Below are positions 40,025 to 64,000 of a DNA stretch of 64,000 nt, piece by piece. Origin of the DNA: Mytilus trossulus (Eukaryota); the NCBI RefSeq assembly GCF_036588685.1, contig NC_086374.1, positions 54,560,001-54,624,000 of the forward strand, given 5' to 3'. The notes under the pieces are model-generated. The model was given only the letters and a program-made list of their open reading frames with translations. It did not search any database and had not been told where the DNA came from. A program made the position numbers and the translations under genes. Each line of letters begins with the position of its first letter. Within the stretch, counting starts at the first letter, position 1.

Positions 40025-42532
40025 CTGCTGGATAACTCGGACTAAAACAAAGTCGGACTATAACAAAATCGGACTATAACTAACTCGGACTATAACAAAC
40101 TCGGCCTACCATTATTCATATGCAGAAATATATTGAACCAACTCGGACTACGATTAGAAGATTGTTTTTTTTTACTGTAATAAAAAAAAATCTTATATAT
40201 TAAAATTATACATGTTATATACGAATTTATGGATTATAATGAATATTTTTGAATAAAAAAGATCGTATATAGAAATGATTAATATTTGTTATATGAGTTG
40301 AATTAGATATGTTTAGATGAGGGTAATTAACTTATACTTGAAGAAATGTTATTGTGATTTATGATGTTTATTGACAAAAGAAATGCTAATGGTTGGCGTG
40401 TGTTCTTGTTTTTATTGTGTTTAATCCTTGGTGTTTATGATTAGTAAATAAACAAAGACAAATTTGATTGACAGTGAATGGCTTCTTAACAATTTCACTA
40501 ATCTGTAATTGATTCAGCAATTGAAAAGTAATTATATTCAAATGGTCACATCAAACAGATACAATGTTTTTAGAAAGGCAAGCCGAGGCAAACATTTATT
40601 ATACATGTATCCAAAAATAGATTTGGAGTAAAATTGAAAAAACAACAGAGATTTCTTTGATCTTACCAAATACTTCTATAAAATAACATGAAAAAAAATC
40701 CATTATCATTTTCAACATGGGTATTGACTTCTTGATAAACTTCTAAAATATTGTTCAAAATGGAACATTGAAATGAACAAAGATAAAACTGAAATAATTG
40801 TATTCCGTAATGGATGGCAACAAGTCAATCACAGTTGGTATTATGACAAGCACGAGCTCAAAGTTGTGAACTCTTTTGTTTACTTAGGGAATTTATTTCA
40901 CTATAACGGAAAATTTCAGCAAACCCAAAAGAGACTATCCCAGCAAGCTAATAAAGCTCTTGCGTCACTCTTTATTTCATTTAAGATGCTGTACATATCA
41001 ACTCAACAGAAATGTGAAATGTTCGATAGTCTTGTTGGATCGATCTTAAGCTACGGTTCTGAGATATGGGCATTTCATCATGCCAAGGACATTGAACAGG
41101 TTCATAATAAATTTTGTAGATTTGTACTTAAAGTTGGTAAAAATTCACCTATTTGTGCTGTTATCGGTGAACTTGGACATTTGCCAATGTATATTATTAG
41201 AAAACAAAGAATACTTAAATATTGGTTGAAAATTGTTGCCAAGAAACCTCCTATTGTATTTGATGTATATAAAATGTTGGTTAATGATGCTGAGAATGGT
41301 AAAACAAACTGGGCGTCAAATGGTCGTACCTTGTTAAATGATCTTGGTTATAATTTTTTATGGTATAACCAAGAAAATGTATTTTTTTCATATGATGTTT
41401 TGAAACTACGCCTCTATGATCAGTTTATACAAAGCTGGCGTTCTAGTATGTTCAATTGTGAAAAATTGGATATTTTGAAAATGTTCAAAATTGACTTTTG
41501 TTTAGAAAAATATTTACTTCTTGATGTCAATGTTAAACTCTTAGCACAACTTAGATGTGGTTCACTTAAACTCAACATTGAAACTGGACGATATAATAAT
41601 GTGCCTCATAATGAAAGACTTTGTCAATGTTGCAATATGAAAGCTATTGAAAATGAATATCATTTTGTAATGATTTGTCCAGCCTATAGACATCTGCGTT
41701 TAAGATTTTTGCCTAAATATTATTGTTCTTGGCCTAATATGTCAAAATGTTTATCACTTATTCAAACAAGTTCAAGGACTTTGGTATTAAAACTTTGTTG
41801 TTTGTTAAATGAAAACTGGAAACTACGGTCACAACTGATAAAGTAGATTATATATGGTACTATCTGTTTAATGTGTGGTGGGTTTTTTTTGTTTTTTTTT
41901 GTGTTATTATTTTGCTTTCTGTTTTCATTTATATTATGTCGCTTACTATATTATATATGTTGTTGATGCTATAGCATTATATTATATGCTGATTTGCAAT
42001 AAACTTATTACAATTACTTTTAATTGGACATTTAGTTCCCAATTCCGTGTAATAACAGGTACTTGGGTGGTTAGATAGGTGTCAACAGTACATGTGCCAG
42101 TTGTTTGTTTAACCTATGGTGATTAAAAAGGTGTCAACTATACACGTGGCATGATGTCATAATCAATTAAGATATGCATATAATAACAATTTATTCTGAG
42201 AGGGACATTATTACAATTAATACTGCAAAGACAAATCAGTGGTAAATTTTCAATATAAATATCAAAAAGATTTTTTTTGGTGTTTTTATTTTTAAATATA
42301 TCTTGTTAACATATTTTTTTTATCCCCATCAAAAATGTTCAAAAATAAATTATTTAATAAATTAAAGATAAAAAATCATTTTGAATTAAGAATTGAAAAT
42401 TAATTTCCAATAACAACAACAACCAACATTATACTTAAATTCTTCTAGTAGTCCGAGTTTGTTATAGTCCGATTTCCGGAGGCCGAGTTTGTTATAGTCC
42501 GATTTTGTTATAGGCCGAGATATCATGGATTC
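40025..42532. mobile_element. Non-autonomous element with inverted arrays of 16-bp subterminal repeats, carrying a nested LINE fragment
   Basis: Five TCGGACTATAACAAAA-type units at 40037-40110 and the inverted array at 42449-42520. Confidence 0.65.
40730..42020 (+). mobile_element. 5'-truncated LINE (RT thumb and C-terminal zinc knuckle; ORF 40773-41846)
   Basis: FVYLG, LSYGSEIW, GELG, LNIETGRY..RLCQCC..ENEYHFVMICPAY; AATAAA at ~41998. Confidence 0.85.
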
Positions 42533-43306: not shown

Positions 43307-46300
43307 ATGACTGACATTGCAAATAAAAGGCATGAAATTGCCAAGGAGATTAGGGCCTTATTGATGTCAAGTCCTGCAGCCCTGACAATTGATGAACTAA
43401 GGAGAGATTTTCATCAGTTCATGGACAAACCTATTCCCTTTAGGGAACTTGGGTACTCCAATCTTGAAGACCTGTTAAGAGACATGACAGATGTTTTACA
43501 GATTACTTATAGAAAGGGAATGATGTGTCTTGAAGTTATCCCAGATGACACAACCCGCCACATTGCAAAACTTGTGTCTAAACAAAAAATTCCAAACAAG
43601 AACAAATATGCCACAATGAGGAGAGGGCCACCTCCTAGAAGGCAGCAATATAAAGTGACGCCTTCTTTGCCTCGTTATATAAAAGATAACATATCAGAAC
43701 TATTTAGATCCTATTCCAATGGCTTACCGTTAACTCATTTAGATACTGCTTATTCAAAGCGCTTTGGTTCGATGTTTTCATTTAATAGACTTGGCTTTGT
43801 GTCTATTAAAGAGCTTTTATATTCTATTCCTGAATGTGTTTTACTCAAAGAATTTCAAGGTGGAGAGTGGAGAGTTTTACCTGTACATATGAAAGCACCT
43901 GAAGGCAATTGGAGAACAAGAGGACACAAACCAGAAAAAAGAACTTTAAGTCCACAAAACAGACCCCCAGATGGATGGTCTAGGCAGTATGACCAAAGAC
44001 AAGCTGCTGCCGTTGTAGAAACACCACAACAATACAACAGCACCTTGACAAATAGAGTTGAGTCAGGAAGACCTGATACCACTGCTCAACAAAAGCCAAT
44101 CAGAGGAAGAGGGAGAGGTAGTTTGAATTTGTATTAAAACTATAGAAAAAATGTTATATGATATATACAAAAAAGAAAATAATCCGTTAAAAAAAAATAA
44201 TTTGTGGGATATATCACAACCCAAATTGGTGCCATTGGTCTTTACCTTAAAATTCAGTTAGATTAAACCTTAAACTAATGTTACTTCTAAGGTGTTGCAG
44301 GGGTTCAAATTAGTAATGAAATGTCGTCCGAGACTTATTGTTTTTCTGAGATACTATATTTTCGTTTGTTACAAAAGTACTTAACCTTTCAGCCTTTAGT
44401 ACTTTGATGCTGTAAATTGTATACAGGACCTATGGTTGTTCTTAAGTTGGGACATTAAACTTGATAATTCACAAAGTCATGTACCTTTCATTCTTAAAAC
44501 ATTGTAAAAGCAAATTTGAACCCCTGCGTTTATGGTGTTATTTAACAGTTGTTGAATTGCAATTAGTTGTAACCATTTATAAATTAAAAATCATTTTACG
44601 ATGCAATGATGTGTATAGGTCATGTAGGTTTTAATTGAAAAGTCTCTATTTTCAATAATAAAGAAAAAAAAAAAACTTCTTAAACAAAGTTGTTTTTATG
44701 TTCACAATAACAATTTACATGATTAAGACACATGCTTTTTGTTGTTGAAAATTACACACTAAATCTGAACGCTTTTTAACAACCTTTAAATAAATGCACC
44801 AGGATGTTTAATACTTTCATTTGACATGAAACACAGCCTATTAACCCCAAAATACTCATTTCCACTATCACACTTAAGTTTACACTTTTATATGTTCAAA
44901 TGATGGAAGACTAGTTTGTATGTGAAGGAATTTGAAATAAAATAGAAGACACGGATATGAAAAGGGGGAAAAATCTTTGCTTTTGATTGTGTTGTTTGCC
45001 TTACATAAAGACATGTAAATGTATTAATGATTTTCTGTACACATGATTAATATAGTAAATAGATGTTATTTATCATGTTTATCTGGTACAATTATTACCA
45101 TGGTTACTGTTTATGATTACAGGAATGAAGAGAAGCGCCAGCGGTGGAGATCAAGCATCTGTAGGTAGAGAAAGTGAATCCAGTTATAATTCCAATGAAC
45201 CAGAAATAGATCCAGAATGTTGTCTTGAAACAGAACCTAATGATGGAACACAACTACTCCAGACAGAATTAAGAGATGTCAGTTGTATATATTTTTTAAA
45301 TTGATCATATTATCTGTATGACCATCTGACACAATGTCTGACATGTAGGACACATTTCCAATGGTCAGATAGGCCAGACAAAGTATCTTACAAAATGTTT
45401 GATAAACATTACTATGGAACGCCATGACTGTCTTCTGATGTTGATTGCTGAATATGTTAGGTGCTTTATCCATTATGTTCAGTAGTATGTATATTATGTT
45501 CAGTAGATATCCTATTATGTTCAGTAGTTATTACATTATGTTTAGTAGTTTTTACATTATATTCGGTGCTTTGGTTATTATGTTCAGTAGTTTCATTTTT
45601 ATATGCAGTGGTATTTGAATTATGTTCGGTACTTCTGACGTTATGTTCAGTACAGTTCTCATTATGTTCAGTACATTCGACATTATGTTCAGTAGATTCA
45701 ATATTATTTGCAGTACATTATGTAATACCTTCAGTAGTCCCGGTTTCTTTATATTCAGTAGATTATTCATTATGTTCAGTAAAAGCATCGATATTATATT
45801 CGGTTCGTTCAACTTTATGTTCAGTGGTTGTATACATTATGATGATGTAGTAAAAGTCGGGAAGTCAATAACGGAAATTGTCGGAAAAAAACGGACGCGG
45901 ATATTTTTGACGGACGTTTTTTTCCTGGACACCGATATGCAACAAAATGTCGTCTGCTAGATTAAGAGTGTCACTATATAAAGTAGATTTAGGTACTTTA
46001 TATCAAAAATTCCTAGATGAAAAGGTTGAAGATGATAGCTTTAACTTTCTAACGGATGAAGATCTTAAAAGGCTTGGGGTCGAGACAATAGGTGACCGCA
46101 TACGTCTGAGAGAAAGTATGCGGCATCTGGATGTGCCAGAGTCAAACTTACAGCCTGACCAAGGTACCTTTATCAATTGAAAAGACTCGTATAGCACATC
46201 ATTTTAAGGGAATTAGTGTTCTCAAACATTTATAAGTTATATATGGTTCGCTACTCACTCCCCAGTACGGACCCATAGAGGGTTAGTAAAATCCATAGGG

Positions 46301-49300
46301 GGTGAGGCCGAAGTCCGAATACCCTATGGGTTTTATTGCCCCTCTATGGTCCGTAGAGGGTCAGTAGATAACCGTATAAAGAATAAATCGTTCGCTGTAC
46401 TTCTGCTGCGTTTTGATGAAAAATAATCAATTAATTCATTATTTTCAAAACAAACAATTTAGGTTATGGCAAATACATATTTAGACAAAACAAAAATATT
46501 GAAAACTAGACAATATTATCATAGATATAATATAGGGTTATTGCATGAATATTATACAATTACTGTCTTTTGGTGAGGTAAATATGTGGTTTTATTGACT
46601 TTTGAAAAACTGATATTCACTGAGGCCAACATATTTACCGAAACAAAAGACAGTAAATGTTTTATTCCATATTCCGAGAGAAATTAATGTTATGGAAAAT
46701 ATTTACCAAAACCAATTGTACACCAAACGGTTTTTTTACCAAAATTATACACGTAAAAGCACGCGACGTTTTGCGCGGTGAATATCCTTTTTTATTCAAA
46801 ATCCCATTCATATAGAAAAACCTACTAATATTTTATCAATATGGAATAATGGGGAATATTGTCCAGGGTAGAATTTTATATTGCACGAGCATTTTTCTTT
46901 ACTTGGGTGCGATAGGTAGTGTTTCATTTTGTCATTTATATTAGATTTAAGAAATTTGTATAGATGTGTTTATCATTTTCGTTCAAGTTATTTATTTTGT
47001 CATCCATTAGAGTTTGAAAATAGTTAATATAACTTTTTTTTTAATTGGGGTTGAAACTTTTAACGTTTTAGTCTGTTTTAAAGTTTTAGTTTCCTCAATA
47101 AGTTGGATGTCAATGTTATATCTTGTGACACATTTTTTTGCAAAAGTATTCCAAAAGTATGTTCCCTTAGTATCTACATTTTAAGTTAATTAAAGGCTTC
47201 ATTTAAAAGCGAGTTTAGATTTTCATTATTTAATCTAGATAGGTACATCATAGTTTTTTTTTATGAAAGTTTCTAGTCTTAGTTCATTTCTAACAGCTAG
47301 GTTTGTTAGCTTCTTTTTGTCCCCAGTACTTGTTAAATAAAATGTGGCTAGTTTTTTGTTCTAAAATAGTTTTATCAATAAAATGAATAGCATCTGGTGT
47401 TCAGCTATTTTTGTTAGCTCGGAGTTTAGCTCTATAAAATTGTATATAAGTGTCCATATGTGTAACATATTTCACTATTATATATGTTAGAATAGGTTTG
47501 ACCGTTTCAAAAAGGTTGTAAGATACTCTCACAGCGGAAGTTGTCCAAAGCCTGATTAGTAAGAATAAATAGCAAATAAAACTTGAAACACAACACAATT
47601 TATAGATGAAGTCACCATAAACAGCAGATGTGACGTCATGAAGCCCCTATGAAATTTACTGAACCCAAAGTATCCATAAGGGGTCATCACGTGACGGCTA
47701 TTAACCATTTAAAACGTGATAATTTACCCGGGGGTACGATCAATCGGATTATTCAGACAGTCAACTGTGTGTTCACCCTCCCCCTTTTCTCCTTTGATAT
47801 AAAGCGTTCAAATGTATAACAAAATAATTACGCAAGAGACTTTTTAATTTTTTACCGGCCAGTTTAAAGGTGATGGATGGTTTGCGGCTCCTCATCTCTT
47901 ACCCATGAAAACTTAAAATCTTTTGTACCCCCCCCTCTAAATTTAAGCGAATTAAGACAAATTATCCCCTTCTACAGCAGCCTGAAAAAAATTAAAGGCG
48001 ACAATAATAATACATGTAAATCTTGTAAATAATAAAAATGTGTCTGTGTAACTAGCATGGTTTTGGTTTGTTCTTCAAAATACCACCAAAGGGCAGTGTC
48101 TTGCCTGAATAAGAGCTGCATGATAGTGAAGACGTGCCCTTACTCCAAGATCGATTATGAATAGTAAGAAATCATGAACCTCAAGAAATCTGACCATAAT
48201 TGACGGTCCTGACACGAAAAAATCAATTGGTATTTATCCGTTTCAGATCCGTTCATCATCCATTTTATCCGTTATACGTCCGGTAGAAGTCCATTTCACA
48301 TTCGTTCAACATCCGTTAAACCACAGGCAAATGCCGCCAAAGGGCAGTGTCTGGACTGAACATTTTGAGCATGCTCAAAACTTTGAACGGACGTTCAACG
48401 GATAAAATGTCCGTTGAACTCCGTTAAGCGTCGGTTTTGTACATGGTACTCGTCCGTTTCGTTTCCGTTTTGTATCCGTTACGTGTCCTTTATACATCCG
48501 TTGGAGGTCTGGAAGTTAAATTCACCAACGGACGTCTACCGGACGTTTAACGGATAAAACGGACGATGAACGGATCTGAAACGGATAAATGTCAATTGAA
48601 AATTTCGCGTTTATAGAAATGCCAATTATTGGTATTTCAGATTTTTTAAGGTTCATGAAAGGTCAGGATAAATGATCGTTTTCTTGTACCCAAGTAAATT
48701 TTTGGTCATAGTTACCTATTCTCAGAATCGAAATAAAGCTGTAAATGTAACAATAATATAATTACTTGTTGTAGAACACCAAGAAAGGAGTTTATCGACC
48801 ATAGTAAATGAAAGATCAATGCTTTTTAGAAGAGATGGAACTTCCTCAAGTAGAAACAGAAGTAGAAGCAAGCAAACAAAACAGAAAACATGGACAGGAA
48901 CGTTTGTGTGTCTCTCAAACAGAAAACAGTCAAAAATACCAAAAGGAACAGAAAAAACGATTCTTTTCCGATGCGGTTTAGGTTTAAAACGGATTACTGC
49001 CAATCTTAACTTCACTGCTGAACAGTTGTTTAATGCAATAGAAGATATATACCCAAAACTTAAAGGATCAGGAGGCTTTGAATTTCTTAGATGCGGTCAA
49101 AACTGTAGAGATCTTCAAGTCATAGACTGCAATTGGTGTCCAGTTGAACTAAGAAACAATATAGGGTCGCAGGCTAAAATATACTTGAGACCAGTTCAGA
49201 AAGACCTAGAAACTTCACCATTGCACGAAGAGGTAGAAACCATTCAAAAGGAGACATGTACGTTCTGCAAACAAAACGTAAACCTTCGTGAGTTACGAGA

Positions 49301-52300
49301 TCATATCAAGTCATGCAGGATGTACCGAAATTTTGAGTTGCCTGACATTGACCCTCCTTCACCTCAACCGCTGATTGATATAGAAGAGCCAGAAGACACC
49401 AATCTTTCGGTAGGTGTTTCACTTGATATTGGGGCAAGAAACGAGGAGTCGCAGATTGAAATAGATGAGCCAGAAGACGCTATTCCTCCGTTAGGAGTTT
49501 CTCTTGGTGTTGGGACAAGAAACGAGGAGCCGCATATTTCAACTGAGACAGGTACTAAAATAATCACTTCAATGGAAGTTATGAATAACATAATTACCAT
49601 TCTCATCAAAACAGTGTTAATGTCACAGGCACTTGTTTCAGTGATTTTTCGTACGTGTATGGATAGTAGATATTATAAAAAAGAAGATGTGGTATGATTG
49701 CCAATGAGACAACTGTCCACAAGAGACCAAAATGATAAAGGCATTAACAGCTATAGGTCACCGCACGACCTTCAACAATGAGCAAAGCCCATACCGCATA
49801 GTCATGTTTTTTTTTATTTTATATACAATAGAGATAGTCATTGACAGTAAAACCTCGGGTTTTTTTTTATCACTTTTCGTAAAACCTCGGTTGACCCCCA
49901 CTAAACAAGCCCCTTCGGCTAAGGTAGCTCCGGTGTCTTCCTCCATCTTGGATTTTGAAGAAGCAGATAACTTTGGTCTACATATTTAATGAAATGTGAA
50001 AATTTTGAGAGTTATATGTAATTTATATAAAAGATGTTTAATATCAATATAGAAATTTGTGTGTTTCATCATAATTACAGCTGTAATTTCTTAAAAACTC
50101 CTTCTTTGTGTGTTTGATTAGATTTTTATTTCAACTATGCCAAATAAGGAGAGATAACTCAGATAAAGTATTTTTTATAATAGAAAATTATGAATTTACC
50201 TATTTTGAAATGTAGCAAGAAAACAAGTTATGTGACCCATTTTTTCTTCTTTTTTTTTTTTATCTGAAAGTATGTTATAAGAGCAATCTTCTCACATGTT
50301 ATATTAAAGTTCTGAAAGGACGTTTTCTTTTTATAACACAAAATTTATTTTCCATGCATAATCGATACAAAATCTGACAACCTGTAGCGTGACAAAAAGG
50401 TCCGTGACCCATACTTTTTAATATATTTTTGGAAAAAGCATGATAAAAACTTCATTTTGACAAGTTATAAAATATTCTTTCAATTCTAATCAAGACGCCC
50501 TAGGCACCTTATAATATAATAGTGGAACACTTCGACTTTTATATTTTATGGATCGTTATTATTCAATTGATAGAATGTCTGATGACTGTGATTCATTGGA
50601 TTTATCAAAACATCTGAAAGTAAGAAATTGTTTATGGAAGAAAATTCTTGCAACGTTTTATGAAGATCATTAGCTTACGTCATACAAATTTACATGTCAA
50701 ACATCTTACCCCGTGGATTTTTTTTTACATACTTAATTCGCATAGAATTTTTTCAATAAGAAAAAAAAGTCATCAGGTTTAAAGTATTTATGCATTGCAG
50801 AAAAGAATATTTCATCTGATGAATATTCTTTTTATATTAAATACACATCTTATAAAGTTTTTTTCGTAGGCAAGACGTTTCAACTAAGGCACTACACATG
50901 CGTCAAAAGGCTTCATTAGGGAGGAAATATTTATCAGAAAAATAAATAAGCAGCCTAATCATGCGCCAGTGGAAACACTTAATGATTCTTGTGCATTTTT
51001 TTTTAATTTTCGTAGTTTTATTTGGTATTAAAAAAATAAATTTCATGACATATGATTCAGGCTTGTGGGTTGTTCCTCATGGTTCTCCGTCTCCCAACCC
51101 CTTAATGTCTCGAAGAGTGATTTAGATTCCCGCTTATGCTCAAAATTTGATTGTCATGTATTTTTTTAGATTATTCTATTTTCAGAATCATCAAGTTTCA
51201 ATACAGTTTCAACAGAGCAACCATTTGCACAAATAGTGGAAAAAATAATAAAGTTTTGCAAAACCAATGCTATTGTTGATCCTGTAGAAATACTAAGAAA
51301 ATATCAAGAGGAAATGGTCATAGGGAGAGCCCTCGAGATAGAGGATGTAACCCAGTGTGCTGAAGGGGACACAAATTTCATTCTGATAGACAGATTTAGC
51401 CTTCTCCAGACTTCTATTGATGAAATCGGATCAATCTCAGATTTGAGATTAACACTGGAGGTGCAGTTTTACAATGAAGTAAGCTTCACTTGATATTTCT
51501 CAGTAGGAAAATACTAAAGGGACAGTCAAGCTCATAAATCGAAAAAATATGACATCCCCATGGCTAAAAAAAAGCCAACAGACAAAAAATAGTACACCAG
51601 ACACAACATAGAAAACTAAAGACTAAGCAACACCAATCCCACCAAAAAATGGGTGTTATCTTATGTAGTTTATAAGATTTAATTCAATTTGATTTTGTGG
51701 TGTTTTAACGCCAGTTTTAAGCAATGCATTTGAGAGATTTCGTAGCGTCCAGTTTCTAATGGTAGAGGTCGAGGAAGCCGGAGTGCCCGGAAATAACCCA
51801 CCGTCCTACGATAGGAAAACTGACATTCCAAGTCAATTAAGATTGGAGTCGACTGTACCCGCACGAGCGAGGTTCGAACTCACAACCTCAGTGTTGACTG
51901 GCTAGTGATTACATAGTAACTACTTTTAAAATAGACCATTCGACCACCGAGGCCTCTTGTTTATAAGATATCTTATATGGAAACTTTATAAGATATCCTA
52001 AGTGATTTATGAGATATCTTATTAATATTTGGTTATAGGATATGTCATATAATTTTATTTATAAGATATCTTAAAAACTATATATATACAATATATCTGT
52101 AATTTGTGTTTTGCAGAAATAATATAAGCATTGTGTATATAAGTTTGATAAAAACTCAACTTAGAGAAGGTGAACCAATTTTTCTGATAAACATCCATTC
52201 ACCAGTCACGTTAAATAAACCTAATTTGGAAAATCGGAAACTCCATAGTTTCGCATCTATGTATTTTTACATTTAAGTAGAAATGTAGCCAATGTTCACA

Positions 52301-55300
52301 AAATGATTATACATGAGTACCTGCACGTCGAAGACATTAAGCATGGAGTTCCCGAAATTTTCAACAGTGCCAAGTGGTCCTGAAGACATTGAAAATGTGC
52401 ACCTCCTGTTCAGGGCAAATTTGAAAATATTCAATATGAATCTTTCATATAAAATTTTTTATGTTTTCAAAAAATAGGTGGCTTTAGATTATGGAGGCCC
52501 CAGAAAAGAATTCTTCAGACTACTGATGCTAGCAATAAAGGAGAAGTATTTCGACAATGGGCTCAGAGATTTATTGGCAGATCAATACCTATTTGTTGGG
52601 AAAATATTTGGTAAGCGTAATCCGTTAATCCGTTTGTAACAATTTCAAGTTGTGTACCAATACGAAAACAAACGTGACTGTCATAAACAATTTTCGGTTT
52701 TGTTTGATCCATACATGAACTTCATTAATTTTATAACTTTAACCACAAGAAGAGCAATTCTTAACAGGACCATGTCTTTATAAGATTTTAACTTTAGAAA
52801 TTAAAGTTGCATTTTTTTTACAAATAAAAGTTTTGCAATTTATGATAAGACTTTTTAAGTTTTAACCCGCCAAAGTGGATAATTTGAAGCAATTGCATTT
52901 TAGGTTATTTTTATAAAATCAGCAAAAATGATGAAAACACTGTACTAATTATGTTGATGTTGGTACATGATATTGTGTTTCATTATTTAATCTTTGTATT
53001 TTACTTTTACGTGACCATGTCCGTAGTAAGCGAAACAGGCGCAATCAAATAAAAACCAGACAGTGTACTTTGTTGTAAAGTTACAGCAGATTTCATTTAG
53101 TGTGTATCCAAAGATATTACTAATAGTCCAGTCAAACTAAGATTTAACCTCAAACTAATTGCAACAGAAAATGTTTTAGTTCTAATCTATAGCATTATGC
53201 CCTTTATATACACAGAAAAAAGTCCCATAAAATCTAACTTGAGGAAAACTCAAAATCAGCACTTTTAATTTCCTATGGAAATTAACATTGGAAGGGGAGA
53301 TAACTCTTACAAAAATGAGTCTTTTTTGGTCAGTTTTTGGTTGTTTTTCTTGAAATGTATGTACAGTATGATACTTTGATGGGGTTATAAGTTTGTATTT
53401 GACTGAAATATATAATCTTCTGCTCATGAAATGTACAAAACCAAAATGGAATGGGTAGTTTTATTTTTTTCATGCATTTTTCATTAAAGAATTTGCAAAT
53501 TTGAAGCTTTGTAACCATTTTGAAAAAATAATGTGAAAATTTGGTAATGTTTATATCTGTATATTATATTATTTCAGCAACTTTCTTATCTAAAGAAACT
53601 TTAAACCACAAAAAGGAGAATACATGCTTAATTATTTTTATTAAATTTGAGATTCTTTACCTTGACATGTTGAAAAATTCAATAAATGGTCAACTAATGA
53701 ATAACGAAATCTAGATTATAGCTTGATAAAATATATGAAAACACATTAAGAGTTGTTTATTATACTGTAAAGACCACTAAAAATCAAAAATCAATACATT
53801 CTGATGGATAGAAGAGGTAAAGTTATAATTTTGTATCAATTTTTATTGATATTTCTGCCTTTTTTGCAAGAGTTATCTCCCTTTACAATACAAATCTACA
53901 TAGGAATTTTAAATGGTGATTTTTTTAGTCTTCCTCAAGTTAGATTTTATGGGACTTTTTTCTGTGTATATTTGGGGTATAATGCTAAAGATTTAAACTT
54001 TTAAATCTTCTGTTGCAATTACTTTTAGGTTAGGGTCAAAATTATGCTAGATAGACTGGACTATAATATCGTTGGTTAGCTTGCTTGTTAGCTGAACCGT
54101 GAAGTCATTGTTCTGTCAGGTAAACAACCCTCCTTTAAGAGTAGACTAGTCCGGCAGATAACCAATCTACCTATCTGTTGGACTAGGCTACTTCGAAAGA
54201 ATGGTAGTATACCTGACCTGATAATGAGTTCACGGTTCAGCTAACAAGCAAGCTAACTAAAGATACTACCTTTGTCTACATACTCAATGAAATCTGCTGT
54301 AAATGTTTTTTTTTATCTTTTCCTTTTCAAGCATTAAGTTCACTTCAAAATGGAAAACTGCCAACTTTTCTTGAATCTGCTGTTGTGGATGAATTGTTCA
54401 ACAATACTGACAGTAACTCAATATGTATTACAAATCTACGACAAGGAATGGATGCTTTAGGATTTTATACTGTAAGTTGGAATTTTCACTTATACTAGTA
54501 GTTTTACTGTCATATTTCAGAAAATAAGTGCAAGTGTTTCGTGATTATGAAATAAATAAGATGTGTATTCTAAAATGTAAAAACGCGTAATTTATTAAAT
54601 GAAAACTAACTCATTTGTTCAGACATTCAGATGCATTTTGAAGATATGAAACATGTATCAGTTTGCTTTTACAACAACTTGTATTCACGGATGATTGATT
54701 CAGTTACATTACCGGTAATAAATTTAAATTTTTGGATCTTCATTATTTTCATCATTTAATCAAGTGAAAGTTTCTATCTGTCTTTTATTGTTTAAACAAA
54801 ATGTGTCGAAATGGCACGAATGACCCCGTCTCAAAAAGTTGAAAAATTTGCGATTTCAATAACACAGGTAGACACAAACATGATGGTAGTCTAACATATT
54901 AAAACTCAGCTTTATATCTGAAAGCGTTTGGGGGAAAAAAAAATCCGTATAACTGTGATTTCAACAAGTTATCAAAGTTCAAAGCCCGTAATGTCGGCAA
55001 CGATTAGCAATGCAGAACATAACTTAAACTTAATCTGTATCTCATCATTGTTAACTCACATGCGAAAAATCAGGGCAATATCTGAAAGCGTTTAGAAAAA
55101 ACTGATAAAAACATTATTTGCTTGCCTTTCAAGGGTAATTACTCTTACAAGGAGTTGTCCAACAAGTTTGACCCAAAGCACACTTTATCATAAGGATAAT
55201 ATATGCTATCGGAAGTTTCTTTCTATCTACATGTATCAGAGTTTTAAAAAAGGTCATAATTTTTCACCTTTCAAGGGCAATAACTCTATCAAGGAGTTGT

Positions 55301-58300
55301 CCATACTAACTTCTTATATCTAATGACTACCCTTTACTTTTGTTTATTGATAGATTTGCAAGGCATTACCGAGTCTAGTGTTTTTATTTCAAAACAACAC
55401 GCCTGCATTAACCATGAGAGGGATTCTACATGTGTTGAAAGCCCAGTTTAGTGAAGAAGGCAGTAATGCCTATTCTTTTGAAAAGCTGGTATATGGAGCC
55501 TTTGTGAGATATCTAAGAGAAGTTGGAAGTGAGTACAATGTAGACTAAACCAAGTACTTATATAATATATTTTGCATCTCTTGAACAGTTGTTCTCTCTC
55601 ACTTTTTTCTCTGCTATATTACAATACATGGTTAGAGATTTTGTGTAAAGCTCGATAATTTTGAATTGTAATTTATGGTACACGTAGTTCTAGTATAATA
55701 TATCGATCCTTATTTTTATCTCCCTGTGATTTCAAGTCAGTGTCAGATGTATTATAACCCAGTGGTGGAAGTGACATTGTAATATTTTCCATACCGTACT
55801 GTATAGATCTCAGAGAGCATTTACACCAAACAATATATCTTAAATGTCCAGGTTAAGTTTTCAGTAAGATATTATACAATACGTGTATATTATATTTGAA
55901 ATAGGCTTGTTTCTTGGTGTTTGTTTGTGTTTTTAAATTATAATTGTCTAATTGTCTCATTTAAGGTGGACGAAGAAGTGCTGTACTCCTGGAAAGTGTT
56001 CTACAGTTTGTCACTGGAGCGACCGAGGAGCCTGTTTTGGGTTTTAAAATCCATCCTTCTATTACCTTCTATGAAGTGGAGACAACATTTTTACCAACAG
56101 CGAACACGTGTATTAGTAGTTTGGGACTTCCTAGGCCATCTTACAATACTGGATTACCAGAGGATGCAGAATTGTTCGAAACCTATGACTACGCTTTTAC
56201 AAGCACATTTTATGGCTTGAAGTAGGCAAAACACTTACTTGTTCTTCTGGTATTGAAACAGTTTTAATTTTATATCATTATTCAACCTGGAAGAAATAAG
56301 ATTTACAAGTATTGATTATAATTGGTCTTTTGCTTAATTTTATGTTTCTAAATACAGAGTAGTATGCTTATAATTATTGTAATTTTGACATAGTCCTTTC
56401 CAACCAGATTAAAAGAGGTCTTAAAACACAGCTCTGGCAATCCACCATTTTATTTTGTGCTCTTAAGACCTTTAAATGGATCATCGATGAGTCATTTAAT
56501 TTGATACAGCAAATATAATAGTTTACAATTCATAATTACGACTTTATGATTGCAAACGCCTTCAGATATACATCAATACCATGATCGTGTGACCTCCAGT
56601 TTAATGGACAGTTCTGGCGTAATGTTTGAAGTTTATCGTTGGGTACAGAAACTGAAGAAGACAACAATTTTACCCCTTGTGTACCCTGGCCATTTTCTTG
56701 TTCATCGGGGTTATCGTCAGTTACTAATTCATTACTGTCAGGTAGGGGCGGTGATTCATCAACAGTGTTGTTCATCACACTTGTGGTAAACATCTGCATA
56801 GGTGTTTTACGGACAGTTCTGATACGATGGTTCGCCCAAGCAGTTTTCCAAATTCCAAGTTTTTCATTTACTTTGTGCAAATACACATGGTGCAGTGCAT
56901 ACATATTAAGTTCATCTAAAGGATCTAATACTCCGATGTCTTCCATATAATAAAATAAATCATAATAGTATGACAAAACTCCAGCATAAACATCTCGCCA
57001 GAGACGCTCTATGCGCTGGTTATGAACACTTTTTCCAGTTATCATGCTACCTCTTCCTGAACCTCTGTTTTTTATCATGTAATCTGCAATTAAAGTGTTC
57101 TCTCTACCCATATCTGAACGGACTCTGGATGGAAGTCCATATGTACTAACGCCTCTCACAAAGCAATTTAATAAAGTCTCTGCTTTGTTATTATCAACAC
57201 ACTCAAGAAAAGTAATCAAACGACTGAATCCATCGATACCACCAGCTATTATCATATTCCATCGTATAAGCTTGTGGTTCGTGTCTACATGCCACAAAGT
57301 ATTTGGAGATTGCACACTGTAGGTTCTCCTATGTAACCGTCCCTTTTTTCTTTCTAGAATACCTTTTCTGTCTACACGGTACATGCTGTCTCTGAGTCTG
57401 TATCTTTGAATCTAGAATTGATTATTAAAATAATCTTATAAGTTATACCTCAAGTTATTCGCGGATGTGTTCTAGTAAATTAATGATATAAAATGTTTTG
57501 TTGTCTATATACATATAAATAAAAAATCATTAATGTATATATGTACACGAATGTGGAAGAAAATCTCAAGAACGTTAGCCAAAAAAGGATCGATAACTCT
57601 GCATGGATGATAAAACATTTTTAAGCGGGAAAATACGAATGCCTTCTCAAATTCATGCTATTAGAAAAGAAATCAAAATATTACAGAAGAGTATGATCCA
57701 CCATGTTCTTACACTTCACTATAATTAATATAGTAGAATAAAATGATATACAAATGCATGAAAATGATATATACAAGTATTAACATGATTAATGTAATAT
57801 AGAACAGATCTATCATGCTATGGAGGGGTATTTGTGAAAAATTCCAGTCGAGGGACTGTGAAATTTCCCAAGCCGCTAGGTATCTGTTTATTTACACCGA
57901 ATGAGTTTTTATTGAAACTGTTTGTATATAATAGAGAAATCGTAGTCCCGCGGGAATTACTACATGAACTTACATACGCGTTAGTGCTTTTTGTAACCTC
58001 AAGGTATCTAAGTGTGAAAGTCATTGTTATTCCATCTTTAAATCGTACATTTGTATAGACGTCTTTTTCCCCACTTTATATCTGAGATTTTCTTTTTAAA
58101 GGTTTTCGGTTTAACTCAATCAATAGGGCTTAACCACGTTGTCTATAAAATGTTATTTGCCGCAAATTCAACAGCAGTGGTGAAAAACGTTAAAATTCTT
58201 TTGAAATGAGGAAAAAATATAAGAATATGCAAAAATACACAGGCTATCAACCAATCAAAATTTAGCATTCTTATATAAGGTGCAATTAATAACAATCAAC

Positions 58301-61300
58301 CAGTATACTGATTTGTATCACTTCATATTAATAATCATTGTGGTGAGGTTAAATTTCCTGTCATTAATTCATCATCCATGCACGAACTTGTCCCATAAAT
58401 AATCATATCTGTACATTTACCTCACTTTCGGGTTTATAGATGTGATTTTTTTTTCTGAAACAAGTGCTTTTCGGACCATCCTCAAGAACTTGCGGTTATC
58501 CGATGTTCAGTACTTCAGTAATTTGATTATAGTTCGTTATTACGTTCTTACTTGTGTTGAACTTTTACATCACTGTCTCATGTGTTGGGGAGGGATGAGA
58601 TTCCCGCGCTAACATGTCTAACCGTGTCGTATATTCTAAATATATGATAATGTGTCAGTCTCAAATCAGGAGCCTGCAATTCATTGGTTGTCGTTTTTTG
58701 ATGTGTTACATATTTGTTTTTCATTTAATTTTTTTATTACTAATAAGGCCTTAGTTCATTCGTTTTAATTGTTTTATAGATGAATTGCAGTATGGGTTGT
58801 GCTCATTGTTGAAGGCCGTAAGGTGACCTATAGTTGTTAATTTCTGTGTCATTTTGGTCACTCAGTGTGGAGAGTTGTCTCATTGCATTCATACCAAATC
58901 TTTGTTTTTACATTGACCATTTGGTATATGGCCGTGCTTTAAGCGACACGTACATATAGGTCATACTGGTACCGTTAATTTTATTACTACCACTGGGTCG
59001 ATGCATCTGCTGGTGGACTTTTAGTCCCCAAGGGTATCACCAGCCTAGTGGCCAGTACTTCGGTACTGCCATGAAAATACGGATTTTTTGTGTTATTAAA
59101 ATTTGCTGTTACAAATATTAGAAATTATTATAAATTAAGGAATGTATCTCCCTCATGCAAAGCTCTGATTCCTTTCACGGATTTGGCTATACTTTTTGGA
59201 CCTTTTGGATTATAGCTCTTCATCTTTTATATAAGCTCTGGATTTTAAATATTATGGCCACGAGCATCACTGAAGAGACATGTATTGTCGAAATGCGCAT
59301 CTGGTGCAAGAACATTGGTACCGTTAATTTTATTAACTATTTTAAAGAAATCAAATCGTTAACTGATAATGGGTGCCATAGGTGGTTCACCGGAATTTTC
59401 TTAGAGATAGGAAACTAAGGGTGTTACTTAAACAGAAAAGGGGAGTGTCAAATATTTCATGTATATTTTGAACAAAGAGAGGAATACCTCGGCAGCCTTT
59501 GCCAAATCAAAACAATGTACCTTCGGACTTTGTGTTTCGAATTGTAGTTACCTTTTCATACTTAGTATTTATTCTAATTCAAGCTCCATGTGATGCAAGA
59601 AAATACTGAGTATCTTGGAGCAAGGCTATTTTCTTCTTTTCGGGGGGAGGGGGACTCCTAGCAAATAACATGTTTATTATGGCATTGTAGAGATTTTCTG
59701 ATTAAATAAATAAAGTTGCCGATCCGGTACATGAATAGATCGGTTAAAAAGCATTTTTTTAAAATTGCAATTAAATTGGAAAAGCTTAATACGAGGGTTG
59801 GAAATTGAGAGCACAAAAAGGGGGTTGGGGGTTTGTTCCACAGGGAAATTTTTATCTTATGAATTCTACCTTTGAAAGGTTAATATACTATTAGGTAATT
59901 AAAAGAGAAAAAAAAAAAAAAAAATGTGAAAAAAAGATTAATGGTTTTTCTTCCATGCCTAGAATTTGCTTCCATTGAAATTTTGCAAACATCCCAGAAC
60001 AAATCACATGAATGATTAATATTGACCATTTGGTATAAAAAAAAAAATATTCAAATATGATGTAACGTGTTCCGAAATCTATGCATTTTTTGAAACAACC
60101 TGATCCGAACTTTCCGTATCTTAATTATGTTGTAGTATGACCCACACACAGGCGGCAAACAGAGGTCTACCCGGGGGTTGATTTCACTATCAAAATACGA
60201 CGGGAAGGGGCACTTTAAATTTAACCCCCTACCTGAAATTATTCAGGTCATGTGAAATTGTAGATCACAACTTATCCAAAGAAACGAAAATTCTGATCTG
60301 AAATTGTCAAAAAAGGATCAGGGGCGGATCCAGCCATTTTATAAAGGGGGTCCTAACCAAGGTCAAAAAAGGAGAGGGTGTTCCAACTATACATGTCCCC
60401 ATTCAAATGCATTGATAGTCCAACAATCACATTTAAGTCAATCAGTTTTTGATTAATGAAGCAATCTTGCTTCTCTCAGAATATATTTTAAGCATACTAT
60501 GGCTAGTAATATTTGTATACACCAGATCTTTATTTGATTTGAATATATTAATAATGTCAACAATTTCGGCTAAATCAATGTTGATCGGATCAGATACCGT
60601 GATTTTCAGATCTATTGTAAATGTCTGTAATTATCATATCCACATCGTAAAGCCGGGAAATGGATCAGAAACATACTAGTGTTTAAAAATATTCAATTTA
60701 GGACTGGGGTTTTGGAATGTATGGTACAAACCTTAATGTTTTGTTGGGCTAATATCTGCTTTAATAGACTCACTCCACAGCAAGGAAATTCCACTACCTG
60801 TTTTGCAACAACAGCATCTAAATCCTCGTCAGAAATGTTAGAAAATTCAAGTTTGCTCAAATTATACATTTTCATATTTCTATAAATTGTACTCTCTGAT
60901 ACACTAAACATCTCACTAATTTCTATAACAGTTAAATCAATTTCAAGCAGGGACTCCAGTGCTTCTTTGGGAATAAAAAACTTGTTATTACTCTTAGTCA
61001 AAATATTGCTGCTAAAATGAACACACGCAATTCTTAATTCCATTATTTTTCTCCTGTCGTTCATACCTAAATATGCGAAATCTTGAAGCGACAACTTGCA
61101 AATTAAGTCAGGTGTTATTTTTTCCTGGTGAAAAATTCCAACTTGGGAACGTAAACCACACCGATTCAAAACTGCTTCCATTTCTTCCATTTTCATTCAA
61201 TCACTTAAAGGTGTTCATGAATAAAACGTCCGTCAAAAGTATCCGCGTTCGGTTTTTTCCGACAATTTCCGTTATTGACTTCCCGACTTTTACTACATCA

Positions 61301-63401
61301 TCATAATGTATACAACCACTGAACATAAAGTTGACCGAACCGAATATGATATCGATGCTTTTACTGAACATAATGAATAATCTACTGAATATAAAGAAAC
61401 CGGGACTACTGAAGATATTACATAATGTACTGCAAATAATATTGAATCTACTGAACATAATGTCGAATGTACTGAACATAATGAGAACTGTACTGAACAT
61501 AACGTCAGAAGTACCGAACATAATTCAAATACCACTGCATATAATAATGAAACTACTGAACATAATAACCAAAGCACCGAATATAATGTAAAAACTACTT
61601 AACATAATGTAATAACTACTGAACATAATAGGATATCTACTGAACATAATATACATACTACTGAACATAATGGATAAAGCACCTAACATATTAAGCAATC
61701 AACATCAGAAGACAGTCATGGCGTTCCATACATTACCTCAAAACTGCCAATTATTTGGTCAGACAGATTGTAGGCTTTCAATTGGCCTCAGTTTGGTTAA
61801 TGTTTCTCTTTTTAGCTTACCTTGCCCATACCAAAATTATGTAAATATTTAGGTTGAAATTACAAATTGATATGAAATAAATGATAAATAAAAGGATATA
61901 TTCAGTTCAGATAATAAAATAATCAACTATAAGTTATCTGTTATATTACCATGCTAAATATTATTGTGTTTATATACATGTATGTCTAGTTATGAAAATT
62001 TTACTGAACTTTGTATGCTTTCAGTTGCTTGCTGAAAAAACAGAGGGGATATGGGCTAGTCAGTTACCATTCTTATACAAGGTTTGTATAATGCAGTGTT
62101 TCCAACACAGCCTTACACTTTTTTGAGTCCTCTTCATTTTTAGGGTGGTTATTTGGGAAAGATAGCCTAAACATTTATCATTTGTTTATACATGTTATAG
62201 GAAATGATCAAATAAGATTGAAAAAAATAAAAAAATAATTAAAAACTTAAACCCAGAACCATAGAGCTTGATGATTGTCTAAGTTGATAAGTTGATGTGG
62301 TGATAACTTCAAGATGGATGTCAAATTTGATAAAACTCCTTGCAAAAGAAAATACTGTGGATTCTTGATTTTCATCATGTTCATGGATTGAGGAAAAATT
62401 GTATTTTCATGTTTCTAAAGTCAACATTCAGCCCTGTAAATTAAAAATAAAATTGAACATTTTAAATGCATCAATCAACTTACCCATGAAGTCCATGAAC
62501 ATGATGAACAAATGGTAGTCTACATATAATAAGGAATCTAAAGTATCACAATTTATTAGGAGGAATTACACATTTATTGCTGTTCTTCGTCTTAACAGTT
62601 GTTTGAAGGTCTTCAGTAATGAACAAACCAGCTTGCATCTAACAACTGTACCAATGTAAAGATAGCATCTGGCATCTACCTAAATAGTATTTTGATGCCC
62701 CACCTACAATAGTAGAGGGGCATTATGTTTTCTGGTATGTGCCTCTGTTTGTCTGTTTGTTCGTTCCGCTTCAGGTTAAAGTTTTTGGTCGAGGTAGTTT
62801 TTGATGAAGTTGAAGTCCAATCAATTTGAAACTTAGTACACATGTTCCCTATGATATGATCTTTCTAATTTTAATGTCAAATTAAAAATTGACCCCAATT
62901 TCATGGTCCACTGAACAAAGGAAAAGATAGTGTGAAGCTCAGGTTAAAGTTTTTGGTCAAGGTAGTTTTTGATGAAGTTGAAGTCCAATCAACTTGAAAC
63001 TTAGTACACATGTTAACTATGATATGATCTTTCTAATTTTAATGCCAAATTAAAGTATTGACCCCAATTTCATGGTCCAGTGAACATGTAAAATGATAGT
63101 GTGAGTGGGGCATCCATGTACTATGGACACATTCTTGTTTGTTATCTATCACTTGATGTTATACGTTACTTTGGTTTATCGACATTTGTCTTGTAATTGG
63201 TATATGTGTATCAATATTAATTTTAATATTTTTCATTTCAGATGAAATACAGTAAACTCCTCAATTTTAAAGACCTAGGGTACATGAGTGTTATAGAGTT
63301 ATGTAATTCTTTTCCTGACCAGATTTTGATAGAAAGACCTGTATCCAAGGGAGATTGGTTATTGTATGATGCTAGAGTTCCTAGAAAATCACCTAAAAAG
63401 G
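43307..63401 (+). CDS. TDRD5: TDRD5-like (Tejas-type) LOTUS-domain piRNA-pathway gene, 5' exons 43307-44117, 45123-45277, 62025-62081, 63242-63401; continues beyond the window
   Basis: Extended LOTUS1 KEIRALLMS...PFRELGY...DMTDV...[16 protein letters not shown]; LOTUS2 YSKRFG..F.FNRLGF; LOTUS3 assembled across exons 2-4 (LQTELRD|[19 protein letters not shown]|[20 protein letters not shown]); phases consistent. The Tudor domain is not in the window, so TDRD7 is not fully excluded. Confidence 0.75.
44298..44526. mobile_element. Small MITE
   Basis: CAGGGGTTCAAATT...AATTTGAACCCCTG TIRs. Confidence 0.6.
45413..45933 (+). repeat. Left TIR (521 bp) containing 17 units of ~21 bp (45473-45835)
   Basis: Reverse complement of 61210-61730 with about a dozen substitutions and no indels seen; core TTATGTTCAGTA. 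Confidence 0.95.
45947..56225 (+). CDS. Transposon-encoded SAM / UBZ zinc finger / HECT E3-ligase-like protein, 664 aa; exons 45947-46163, 48775-49551, 51186-51478, 52478-52610, 54332-54471, 55354-55528, 55966-56225
   Basis: SAM ([20 protein letters not shown]); CX2CX11HX3C at 49257-49316; HECT motifs LEVQFYNE|[26 protein letters not shown] (catalytic Cys), C-terminal FYGLK; all six introns GT-AG and in phase, no stops. Confidence 0.88.
48212..48610. mobile_element. MITE in intron 1 of the HECT gene
   Basis: ~80-bp TIRs (caattggtatttatccgtttcagatccgttcatc / gatgaacggatctgaaacggataaatgtcaattg). Confidence 0.75.
51679..51958 (-). mobile_element. tRNA-derived SINE
   Basis: Minus strand GGCCTCGGTGGTCGAATGG (A box) and GTGAGTTCGAACC (B box); 11-bp TSD GTTTATAAGAT (51668-51678, 51959-51969). 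Confidence 0.8.
53084..54299. mobile_element. Tc1/mariner-type hairpin MITE (TA TSD) interrupted by a Harbinger-type MITE
   Basis: TA-CAGCAGATTTCATT...AATGAAATCTGCTG-TA; the arms rejoin once 53124-54066 is removed. Confidence 0.75.
53124..54063. mobile_element. PIF/Harbinger-type MITE with ~190-bp imperfect TIRs
   Basis: TAGTCCAGTC...GACTGGACTA; TAA TSD (53121-53123, 54064-54066). Confidence 0.75.
56536..61196 (-). CDS. IS3EU-type DDE transposase with N-terminal SAM and HTH domains, 446 aa; exons 61196-60732 and 57411-56536
   Basis: SAM-like [34 protein letters not shown]; [22 protein letters not shown]; catalytic WHVD...[32 protein letters not shown]; phase-0 GT-AG intron; no lesions. Confidence 0.92.
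58967..59335 (+). mobile_element. Non-LTR retrozyme: one 349-nt monomer plus a 20-nt terminal direct repeat
   Basis: TGGTACCGTTAATTTTATTA at 58967-58986 and 59316-59335; contains a hammerhead ribozyme. Confidence 0.75.
59264..59307 (+). ncRNA. Intact type I minimal hammerhead ribozyme; predicted cleavage after C59301
   Basis: Stem I GCAUCA/UGGUGC, core CUGAAGA, stem II GACA/UGUC, GAA, palindromic stem III AUGCGCAU, AUC cleavage triplet. Confidence 0.85.
61210..61730 (-). repeat. Right TIR (521 bp) with the mirrored ~21-bp array (61308-61670)
   Basis: TACTGAACATAA cores; reverse complement of the left TIR. Confidence 0.95.
62692..63140. repeat. HINE/Helentron-type element with two ~168-bp tandem satellite units
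   Basis: tcaggttaaagtttttggtc...gatagtgtga at 62771 and 62939; short subterminal IR (atgcccc / ggggcat). Confidence 0.6.
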
Positions 63402-64000
63402 GTAAATATTCATCACATTCTACCAAAATTATTAAGCCTATAAATAAAAATAGTGTTAAGGCTACATAGCTCTTGAACCTATTCAAATCAGTCACAACTA
63501 TTAATGAATTTCAGTTTATTAAAGGGCATCGTTGTCAAATTCATGTTCACATATTTATTTTTTTTATTTTTAGCTCACCTGGCCCAAAGGTGACGTCAAT
63601 TGTTGTCGTCGTTAACTTTTACAAAAATCCTCTCAAACTACTGGGCCAAATTTAACCAAACTTGGCCACAATCATCATTAGCGTATCTAGTTTAAAAAGA
63701 AAACCAAGATTGCCGCCATGGCTAAAAATAGAACATGGGGTTATAAAACTTAAACCAAAGCATTTACAGAAAAGCTTTAAAAAAATGTTTATCAAGTCAA
63801 GATCTATCTGCCCTGAAAGTTTCAGATGAATTGGACAACCGATTGTTGAGTTGCTACCCCTGAATTGGTAATTTTAAGGAAATTTAGCCGTTTTGGTTAT
63901 AATCTTGAATATTATTATACAGTACTCTTCAAAAATATCGATTCAATAACTTTTTTCTCCGATTTCCGTGTTTCTCGGAATCACACCGAGTACCGCGGAT

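Follow-up and report, generated by a model that had tools for sequence, protein, structure and literature searches.

Does a gene for a HECT ubiquitin ligase that lies between the ends of a DNA transposon belong to that transposon, and what could it do there? The question is raised by a 16.3-kb element of the bivalve Mytilus trossulus (genome of 1.3 Gb, 32% G+C), located in contig C2:54560001-54624000, the 64-kb stretch of DNA analysed in this study and referred to here as the window. An earlier interpretation made from the letters of the window (the sequence-only reading) had described the element as a transposon pairing an IS3-type DDE transposase with a HECT ligase of its own. The element is a cut-and-paste DNA transposon, intact and autonomous, that belongs to the IS3EU/GingerRoot superfamily, and genome comparisons support the HECT gene as a dedicated module of this transposon lineage, as opposed to a stray host gene or a one-off capture. 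The HECT gene still accompanies the transposase in elements whose proteins have diverged to about 50% identity, and it is found next to it in several bivalve families.

The element is bounded by terminal inverted repeats (TIRs) of 521 nt each, which are 98% complementary, and by a 6-bp target site duplication (TSD), CATTAC, on both flanks; both termini read TATGGAACGCC, giving the terminal form TATGG..CCATA (Table 1). The sequence-only reading had claimed 521-bp TIRs, TAT..ATA ends and an exact CATTAC TSD, all of which were recovered. A chance inverted repeat is ruled out by the length and complementarity of the arms, by the TSD and by the presence of at least 45 TIR matches in the genome, at 85-99% identity. 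Each TIR contains approximately 15 repeat units with a 21-bp period and the unit core ATTATGTTCAGTA. Among the TIR matches, about 10 inverted pairs with a spacing of 2.7-12 kb were found, one of which encloses a transposase fragment at 96% identity; these short pairs look like deletion derivatives mobilised by the window element or a sister copy.

The superfamily was assigned by comparing the termini, the TSD and the transposase features with the published definition of IS3EU/GingerRoot (PMC10045372, PMC12730594, PMC6839031), which consists of TAYGG..CCRTA ends, a 6-bp TSD and an integrase/IS3-like DDE transposase without the HHCC motif (PMC10045372, PMC12730594). Termini of the TA..TA type, specifically TAYGG..CCRTA, were found in the window element and in four paralogous elements, as were 6-bp TSDs in the window element and its paralogues. 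The transposase gene comprises two exons and encodes 446 amino acids (aa); its structure is the sole GT-AG model with a junction (after QQNIK) like that of the M. edulis and M. coruscus homologues, and within exon 2 the coding part runs from 57411 to 56539, followed by the stop codon at 56536-56538. Profile and database searches were performed with the transposase as separate exons and with the HECT product as an identical database protein (XP_063423566.1). Exon 2 of the transposase matched PF24764 (rva_4) with an E-value of 2e-77 and rve weakly, and the helix-turn-helix (HTH) matches of exon 1 were weak (Pfam). The D, D and E residues (D43, D100 and E135 of the exon 2 piece, corresponding to about aa 198, 255 and 290) are invariant in 19 homologues and have the D-57-D-35-E spacing of the integrase/IS3 type, with the motifs WHxDTNHKL, RSDxGxEN and HNQRIERLW; the first D falls 100-300 residues from the N-terminus, as in IS3EU transposases. 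The proposed uninterrupted, spliced SAM-HTH-DDE transposase of 446 aa is upheld by the GT-AG model, rva_4 and the DD35E spacing, its HTH match being weak, and the proposed IS3EU type by the ends, the TSD and an integrase-like DD35E core lacking HHCC. Ginger1 and Ginger2, whose termini differ and whose TSDs are shorter, were set aside on these general grounds as the identity of the element.

The linkage between the two genes was seen repeatedly within the M. trossulus genome. The exact window transposase is single-copy; the next matches are 47-63% identical, and a genome search placed matches to HECT exons 2, 3 and 7 next to these transposase matches. A related transposase match lies in convergent orientation at a distance of no more than 10 kb from 23 of the 30 HECT C-lobe matches and, conversely, a convergent HECT partner lies within 10 kb of 23 of the 28 closest transposase matches. 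Approximately 80 more distant transposase matches (32-37% identity) have no HECT exon nearby; therefore, the HECT gene is the mark of a single clade and not of the whole superfamily. No stand-alone host copy of the HECT gene was seen among the matches in the M. trossulus genome. Five paralogous loci were read, comprising four complete elements (on C13, C8, C9 and C10) and one locus on C4. The complete elements measure 17.3, 22.8, 25.2 and 28.5 kb; their TIRs span 343 to about 875 bp, their termini read TATGGAACGCC, and their TSDs are perfect in three cases (AAATAC, CAATTC, GTATTG) and a 5/6 match in one. All four enclose a two-exon transposase gene and seven HECT exons with order and orientation kept, at a divergence of about 45-55% protein identity. 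At the C4 locus, transposase exon 1 is missing and there is no TIR pair around the two genes.

The pairing extends to other bivalves, as judged from consecutive accessions, consecutive locus tags and equal contig sizes. The transposase and HECT genes have consecutive accessions in M. edulis (CAG2199510/11) and M. coruscus (CAC5420889/90), and consecutive locus tags in Tegillarca granosa (KUTeg_012286/7) and Mactra antiquata (ACF0H5_006413/4). In ENA assemblies, all five contigs with one transposase cluster also hold the matching HECT cluster, and two further transposase-HECT cluster pairs occur on contigs of 11,836 and 30,226 bp, contigs being equated by size in both cases. Combined, the 23 linked loci, the four complete paralogues enclosed by TIRs and TSDs, and the four other bivalve species bear out the dedicated module that the sequence-only reading had proposed; that reading had also named unlinked single-copy HECT genes, or a one-off capture, as what would speak against it, and in M. 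trossulus the pairing withstood a check for both.

Within the same genome, a young subfamily was noted with at least 12 near-identical copies (e.g., C2:94644725, C3:13672341, C7:15325994 and at least 9 more), each having an intronless 528-aa transposase frame and a convergent HECT C-lobe exon 4.6-7.9 kb away; of the two-gene lineages in M. trossulus, this subfamily seems to have been active most recently. Separately, a stretch of ~5 Mb on contig C5 (about 49.7-55.1 Mb) holds ~10 degenerate HECT exon fragments, most of them with stop codons and with no close transposase match within 10 kb, and may represent a transposon graveyard or heterochromatin.

The HECT gene is composed of seven GT-AG exons that translate to 664 aa, exactly the M. 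trossulus protein XP_063423566.1 ("uncharacterized protein"), and it converges on the transposase gene with the two coding ends 313 bp apart. The encoded protein contains a SAM domain, a ubiquitin-like domain, a C2HC finger, a disordered linker of ~80 residues and a HECT domain. The latter is recognised by sequence profile (PF00632, 37.6 bits against a cut-off of 23.9), and its catalytic cysteine, Cys627, is located ~35 residues from the C-terminus. These results agree with the convergent, uninterrupted and spliced SAM..HECT gene of 664 aa, with its cysteine in LPTANTC, that had been read from the window. Across 26 homologues drawn from five phyla (bivalves, a hydrozoan, an anemone, a sponge, an acorn worm and a crinoid), no change was seen at C627 (in PTANTC) or at the zinc ligands C234, C237, H249 and C253, and the C-lobe cysteine is retained in all six M. 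trossulus HECT copies that were read. When a profile of 26 full-length homologues was compared with PDB, the best match was AREL1 (3.8e-16), followed by E6AP, ITCH, WWP1 and Rsp5, with the matches falling on two stretches, the start of the N-lobe and the C-lobe.

The AlphaFold2 model of the protein had a mean predicted local distance difference test (pLDDT) of 74, with 10-residue blocks over residues 345-660 mostly at 80-95, and a Foldseek search of PDB returned more than 100 HECT structures (best E-value 4.4e-11, probability 1.0, 340-430 aligned columns). The bilobal HECT fold is present in the model, and the structure-cluster matches were all HECT. Residues 105-260, folded alone, reached a pLDDT of 91 and formed a beta-grasp domain followed by a zinc finger; matches of the beta-grasp were weak and all ubiquitin-like (SAP18, USP7 UBL, RA, RAWUL, PB1, SUMO). 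C2HC zinc-finger families matched the protein below their cut-offs (Pfam), so that, of the UBZ finger proposed earlier, the zinc finger itself stands as a C2HC type with invariant ligands, and the UBZ label is plausible but not shown. More than 1,200 protein clusters (50% identity) share the ubiquitin-like and zinc-finger region of HECT exon 2.

The sequence-only reading had also expected that automated pipelines would call this gene G2E3-like. No source uses that name; public annotation of the HECT-family genes reads 'uncharacterized protein' or 'HECT-type E3 ubiquitin transferase'. A G2E3-like ligase or host gene was rejected as the identity of the protein: no PHD match was found in it (Pfam), its front end is SAM, ubiquitin-like and C2HC, and by predicted structure other HECT domains are nearer to it than G2E3, the G2E3 cluster having a template modelling (TM) score of 0.71 vs. 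0.74-0.77 for the SMURF1, NEDD4-like and AREL1 clusters.

The two proteins of the element are related at their N-termini. The profile of the ligase family matches the SAM domains of Bicaudal-C, tankyrase and ANKS6 at its N-terminus; the SAM match of the window protein itself is weak, and those of several homologues are above the cut-off (Pfam). In an hhalign comparison, columns 11-69 at the N-terminus of the transposase family aligned with columns 4-62, the SAM domain of the ligase family, at a probability of 94.9% (E-value 4.5e-8); therefore, both proteins start with homologous SAM domains. The element is symmetric in this respect, with one TIR sequence at both ends, an ATG 14 bp inside each inner TIR edge and, on both sides, a first exon that codes for SAM. 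Because of this symmetry, the arrangement suggests that one end of the ancestral element, with its promoter and first exon, may have been duplicated in inverted form.

Table 1. Coordinates of the transposon features in the window (position 1 is the first letter of the 64-kb stretch).
Feature	Positions	Strand	Remark
TSD, left copy, CATTAC	45407..45412	no strand	sequence read
Left TIR, 521 bp, starts TATGGAACGCC	45413..45933	+	
HECT exon 1 (aa 1-72): SAM domain	45947..46163	+	
HECT exon 2: ubiquitin-like beta-grasp (about aa 110-215), C2HC finger, start of disordered linker	48775..49551	+	
HECT exon 3: linker end, N-lobe start	51186..51478	+	
HECT exon 4: N-lobe motif	52478..52610	+	
HECT exon 5	54332..54471	+	
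HECT exon 6	55354..55528	+	spliced contig joins 55528 to 55966
HECT exon 7: C-lobe with catalytic Cys627 (LPTANTC) and stop codon	55966..56225	+	
Transposase exon 2 (aa 156-446) and stop: rva_4/rve integrase-type core	56536..57411	-	
Transposase exon 1 (aa 1-155): SAM-like N-terminus, then helix-turn-helix	60732..61196	-	
Right TIR, 521 bp	61210..61730	-	
TSD, right copy, CATTAC	61731..61736	no strand	sequence read

Taken together, the ligase is probably a functional accessory factor of the element. The ligase, like the transposase, would be transcribed from a promoter in the TIR, and the transposase would bind the sites of 21-bp period within the TIRs. The SAM fold often pairs or polymerises, and pairing of the homologous N-terminal SAM domains could bring the ligase to the bound transposase, where ubiquitin would be passed from an E2 via Cys627 to nearby proteins. 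The substrates might be the transposase or, on the host side, proteins of chromatin, repair or silencing, and the transfer would help or tune transposition, either promoting or restraining it.

Several observations weigh against such a role. The window-element subfamily has one coding copy in the genome. The HECT domain is short, about 40-60 residues below canonical ones, and the middle of its N-lobe, the site of E2 binding, is divergent: residues at about 480-550 are helical and confidently modelled but have no profile match, and the Pfam match covers the C-lobe only. Outside the bivalves, full-length ligase homologues exist and are often multi-copy, and the HECT homologues of cnidarians, a sponge, a hemichordate and a crinoid could be host genes. 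Co-phylogeny of the two genes was not significant across seven distinct lineages (Mantel r 0.34, exact p 0.14), in which the transposase and ligase trees share the C8+C10 clade only; the Mantel r of 0.90 obtained with redundant pairs included is due to two trivially close pairs. A predicted SAM-SAM complex scored 0.57 (best of three controls 0.00; contacts agreeing between runs; partner pLDDT of at least 77) and so received the 'weak support' mark, which was reached by 51 of 78 solved complexes and 2 of 108 mismatched pairs. Scores of 0.60 or lower, which included 5 of the 78 solved complexes and each of the 4 mismatches to pass, point to false pairs more often than to true ones unless there is prior reason to expect the pairing, and the model may remember solved SAM pairs; the prediction was therefore not counted as evidence for binding. 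In favour of an active element, one contig of a transcriptome-like run joins position 55528 to 55966 (GT..AG), the junction of HECT exons 6 and 7, and contigs of two other runs cover 56247-57411 only, i.e., transposase exon 2 and its 3' end, terminating at the exon edge. These runs are only presumed to be RNA, so they give a hint of expression and nothing firmer; in the raw RNA run X19, nearly all reads fall on an intronic repeat, and the loose end of the X1 contig had no match within the 64-kb window.

The divergent central N-lobe and the C-lobe-only Pfam match also bear on whether the HECT domain works at all. It may be dead, with the protein acting as an adaptor that uses its SAM, ubiquitin-like and zinc-finger parts to anchor the transpososome on ubiquitin-marked chromatin or on host ligases, and the good conservation of these three N-terminal modules would fit such a role. 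The HECT domain of human G2E3 is reportedly inactive, and because of this the conserved HECT fold does not prove activity. However, the catalytic cysteine and the PTxNTC motif are invariant in five phyla, the C-terminal tail is conserved and the N-lobe start motif DxGGxxKEFF is retained, which makes an inactive adaptor improbable. A still smaller probability is given to a captured host gene that travels as a passenger of no use to the transposon. There is precedent in fungal IS3EU elements, where TET/JBP and alpha-kinase genes behave like passengers that moved passively between transposon families (PMC12730594). In the Mytilus lineage, by contrast, the gene is intact, its orientation and exon order are kept both in lineages with protein identities of about 45-55% and across several bivalve families, it encodes an N-terminal SAM domain related by homology to that of the transposase, and the M. 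trossulus matches include no stand-alone host copy.

An accessory ligase could also act in one particular direction. As a self-restraint module, it would ubiquitinate the transposase for degradation through SAM pairing, keeping transposase level and copy number low so that the host is unharmed and the element persists. The number of full-length copies per HECT-bearing subfamily is small (1 to 4 for most), the SAM domains common to both proteins point to an encounter between them, and the convergent genes, which end 313 bp apart and whose two 3' ends are spanned by contigs, could add antisense control. Yet a recent spread is evident from the 12 or more near-identical copies of one HECT-bearing subfamily, the transposase as substrate is a supposition, and the proposal amounts to the accessory-factor explanation with a chosen direction of effect, not to a separate kind; restraint specifically is therefore regarded as rather unlikely. 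A broader extension of the accessory-factor explanation is similarly speculative. It would posit an ancient two-component transposon, spread over the Metazoa (sponges, cnidarians, bivalves, echinoderms, hemichordates), in which transposase and HECT ligase co-assemble via SAM domains on the periodic TIR sites and the transpososome ubiquitinates itself or nearby factors of chromatin or repair. On this view, the inverted end duplication would account for the shared promoter and SAM exon, and domesticated copies would be found among the stand-alone SAM-HECT or small HECT genes of animals.

Enzymes already known from transposons include deubiquitinases, SUMO-removing enzymes and erasers of DNA methylation. 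No report of a transposon with a HECT ubiquitin ligase was found in the searchable literature, nor was the pairing of IS3EU with a HECT gene, Repbase entries being outside that search. The N-terminus of RAG1 carries a RING E3 domain. RAG1 is a Transib/ProtoRAG-derived transposase (transposon origin in PMC1131882, PMC4411706), and RAG1/ProtoRAG resembles the Mytilus element in having a DDE-type recombinase that acts with ubiquitin ligase activity and a two-gene convergent transposon; the superfamily is unrelated, however, and the RING is fused to the recombinase, whereas the HECT domain is in a second protein. The deubiquitinases of Helitrons and Helentrons (OTU, VTD; PMC9741609) are likewise transposon-encoded ubiquitin enzymes, widespread in aquatic animals and presumed to aid transposition, but they remove ubiquitin and are fused into RepHel, whereas the Mytilus HECT protein would add ubiquitin and is encoded by a separate gene. 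Cellular HECT ligases (AREL1, E6AP, the NEDD4 family, G2E3) share the HECT fold, the N-lobe start motif and the position of the C-lobe cysteine, and differ from the Mytilus protein in its SAM, ubiquitin-like and C2HC front end, its divergent central N-lobe and its multi-copy presence inside transposons.

Among the closer relatives, the animal IS3EU elements of oysters, corals, fish, an acorn worm and Hydra have the same TAYGG..CCRTA ends, 6-bp TSD, long TIRs and DDE transposase without HHCC, with the first D 100-300 residues in; Pacific oyster and corals are among the GingerRoot hosts (PMC6839031). The transposase is the sole gene described for published animal IS3EU, whereas the Mytilus clade has a second gene, and neither a HECT gene nor a SAM domain of the transposase is mentioned in the searchable literature on animal IS3EU. 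Fungal IS3EU elements (PMC12730594) do carry extra enzyme genes between their TIRs, one of them opposite to the transposase, for which an escape from host silencing was proposed. These differ in host (fungi vs. animals) and in chemistry, being a TET/JBP dioxygenase and an alpha-kinase (DNA demethylation vs. ubiquitin ligation), and they moved between unrelated superfamilies, whereas the Mytilus HECT gene shares a domain with its own transposase. Beyond Repbase entries, the structure and function of IS3EU are largely unexplored (PMC11934779); the same paper reports, for Hydractinia, an IS3EU-like repeat as a marker of putative centromeres.

Should the transposase or host factors prove to be targets of the ligase, the element would exemplify a new use of the host protein-tagging system by mobile DNA, a system also exploited by many viruses, and the two-gene form is simple and could be tested by an excision assay. 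The little-studied IS3EU superfamily also gains a defined clade with a marker gene. The proteins sharing the exon 2 region are filed, among the names seen, as 'uncharacterized', 'hypothetical', 'HECT domain-containing' or 'SAM domain-containing'; at least the bivalve members should count as transposon genes in studies of gene-family expansion.

Additional observations concern the genes and introns of the element. In the C8 paralogue (C8:47345484-47347421), the linker between finger and HECT domain has grown to an Asn/Thr/Gly-rich repeat of ~350 residues (NNTNGM-like units) within one open exon. One X2 contig ends at the acceptor of transposase exon 2 (57411) and continues as TACTGAACATAAT, the TIR repeat-unit core (61362-61659); this contig may represent a transcript with its start in the TIR and without exon 1, or else a deletion derivative. 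An inverted pair of 77-nt segments with 84% complementarity is located at 49722-49798 (HECT intron 2) and 58786-58862 (transposase intron), and DNA related to it is present in all five paralogous elements at differing relative positions, so that it may be a common miniature inverted-repeat transposable element or a conserved cis element. In HECT intron 5, a short repeat (54825-55139) shows very high depth in all four mapped runs, with rearranged joints; it is abundant, being transcribed or multi-copy, and is unrelated to the genes of the element.

The element is inserted between plus-strand host gene exons at 43307-44137 and 63242-63469, which encode LOTUS/OST-HTH domains (PF12872, E-value 1e-23). 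Such domains are typical of TDRD5/7-like germline proteins of the piRNA pathway. Because the flanking exons encode them, the transposon lies within an intron of a likely transposon-silencing host gene. Upstream of the LOTUS exon, a 357-aa open frame on the plus strand (40773-41846) has no Pfam match and may be a remnant of another mobile element.

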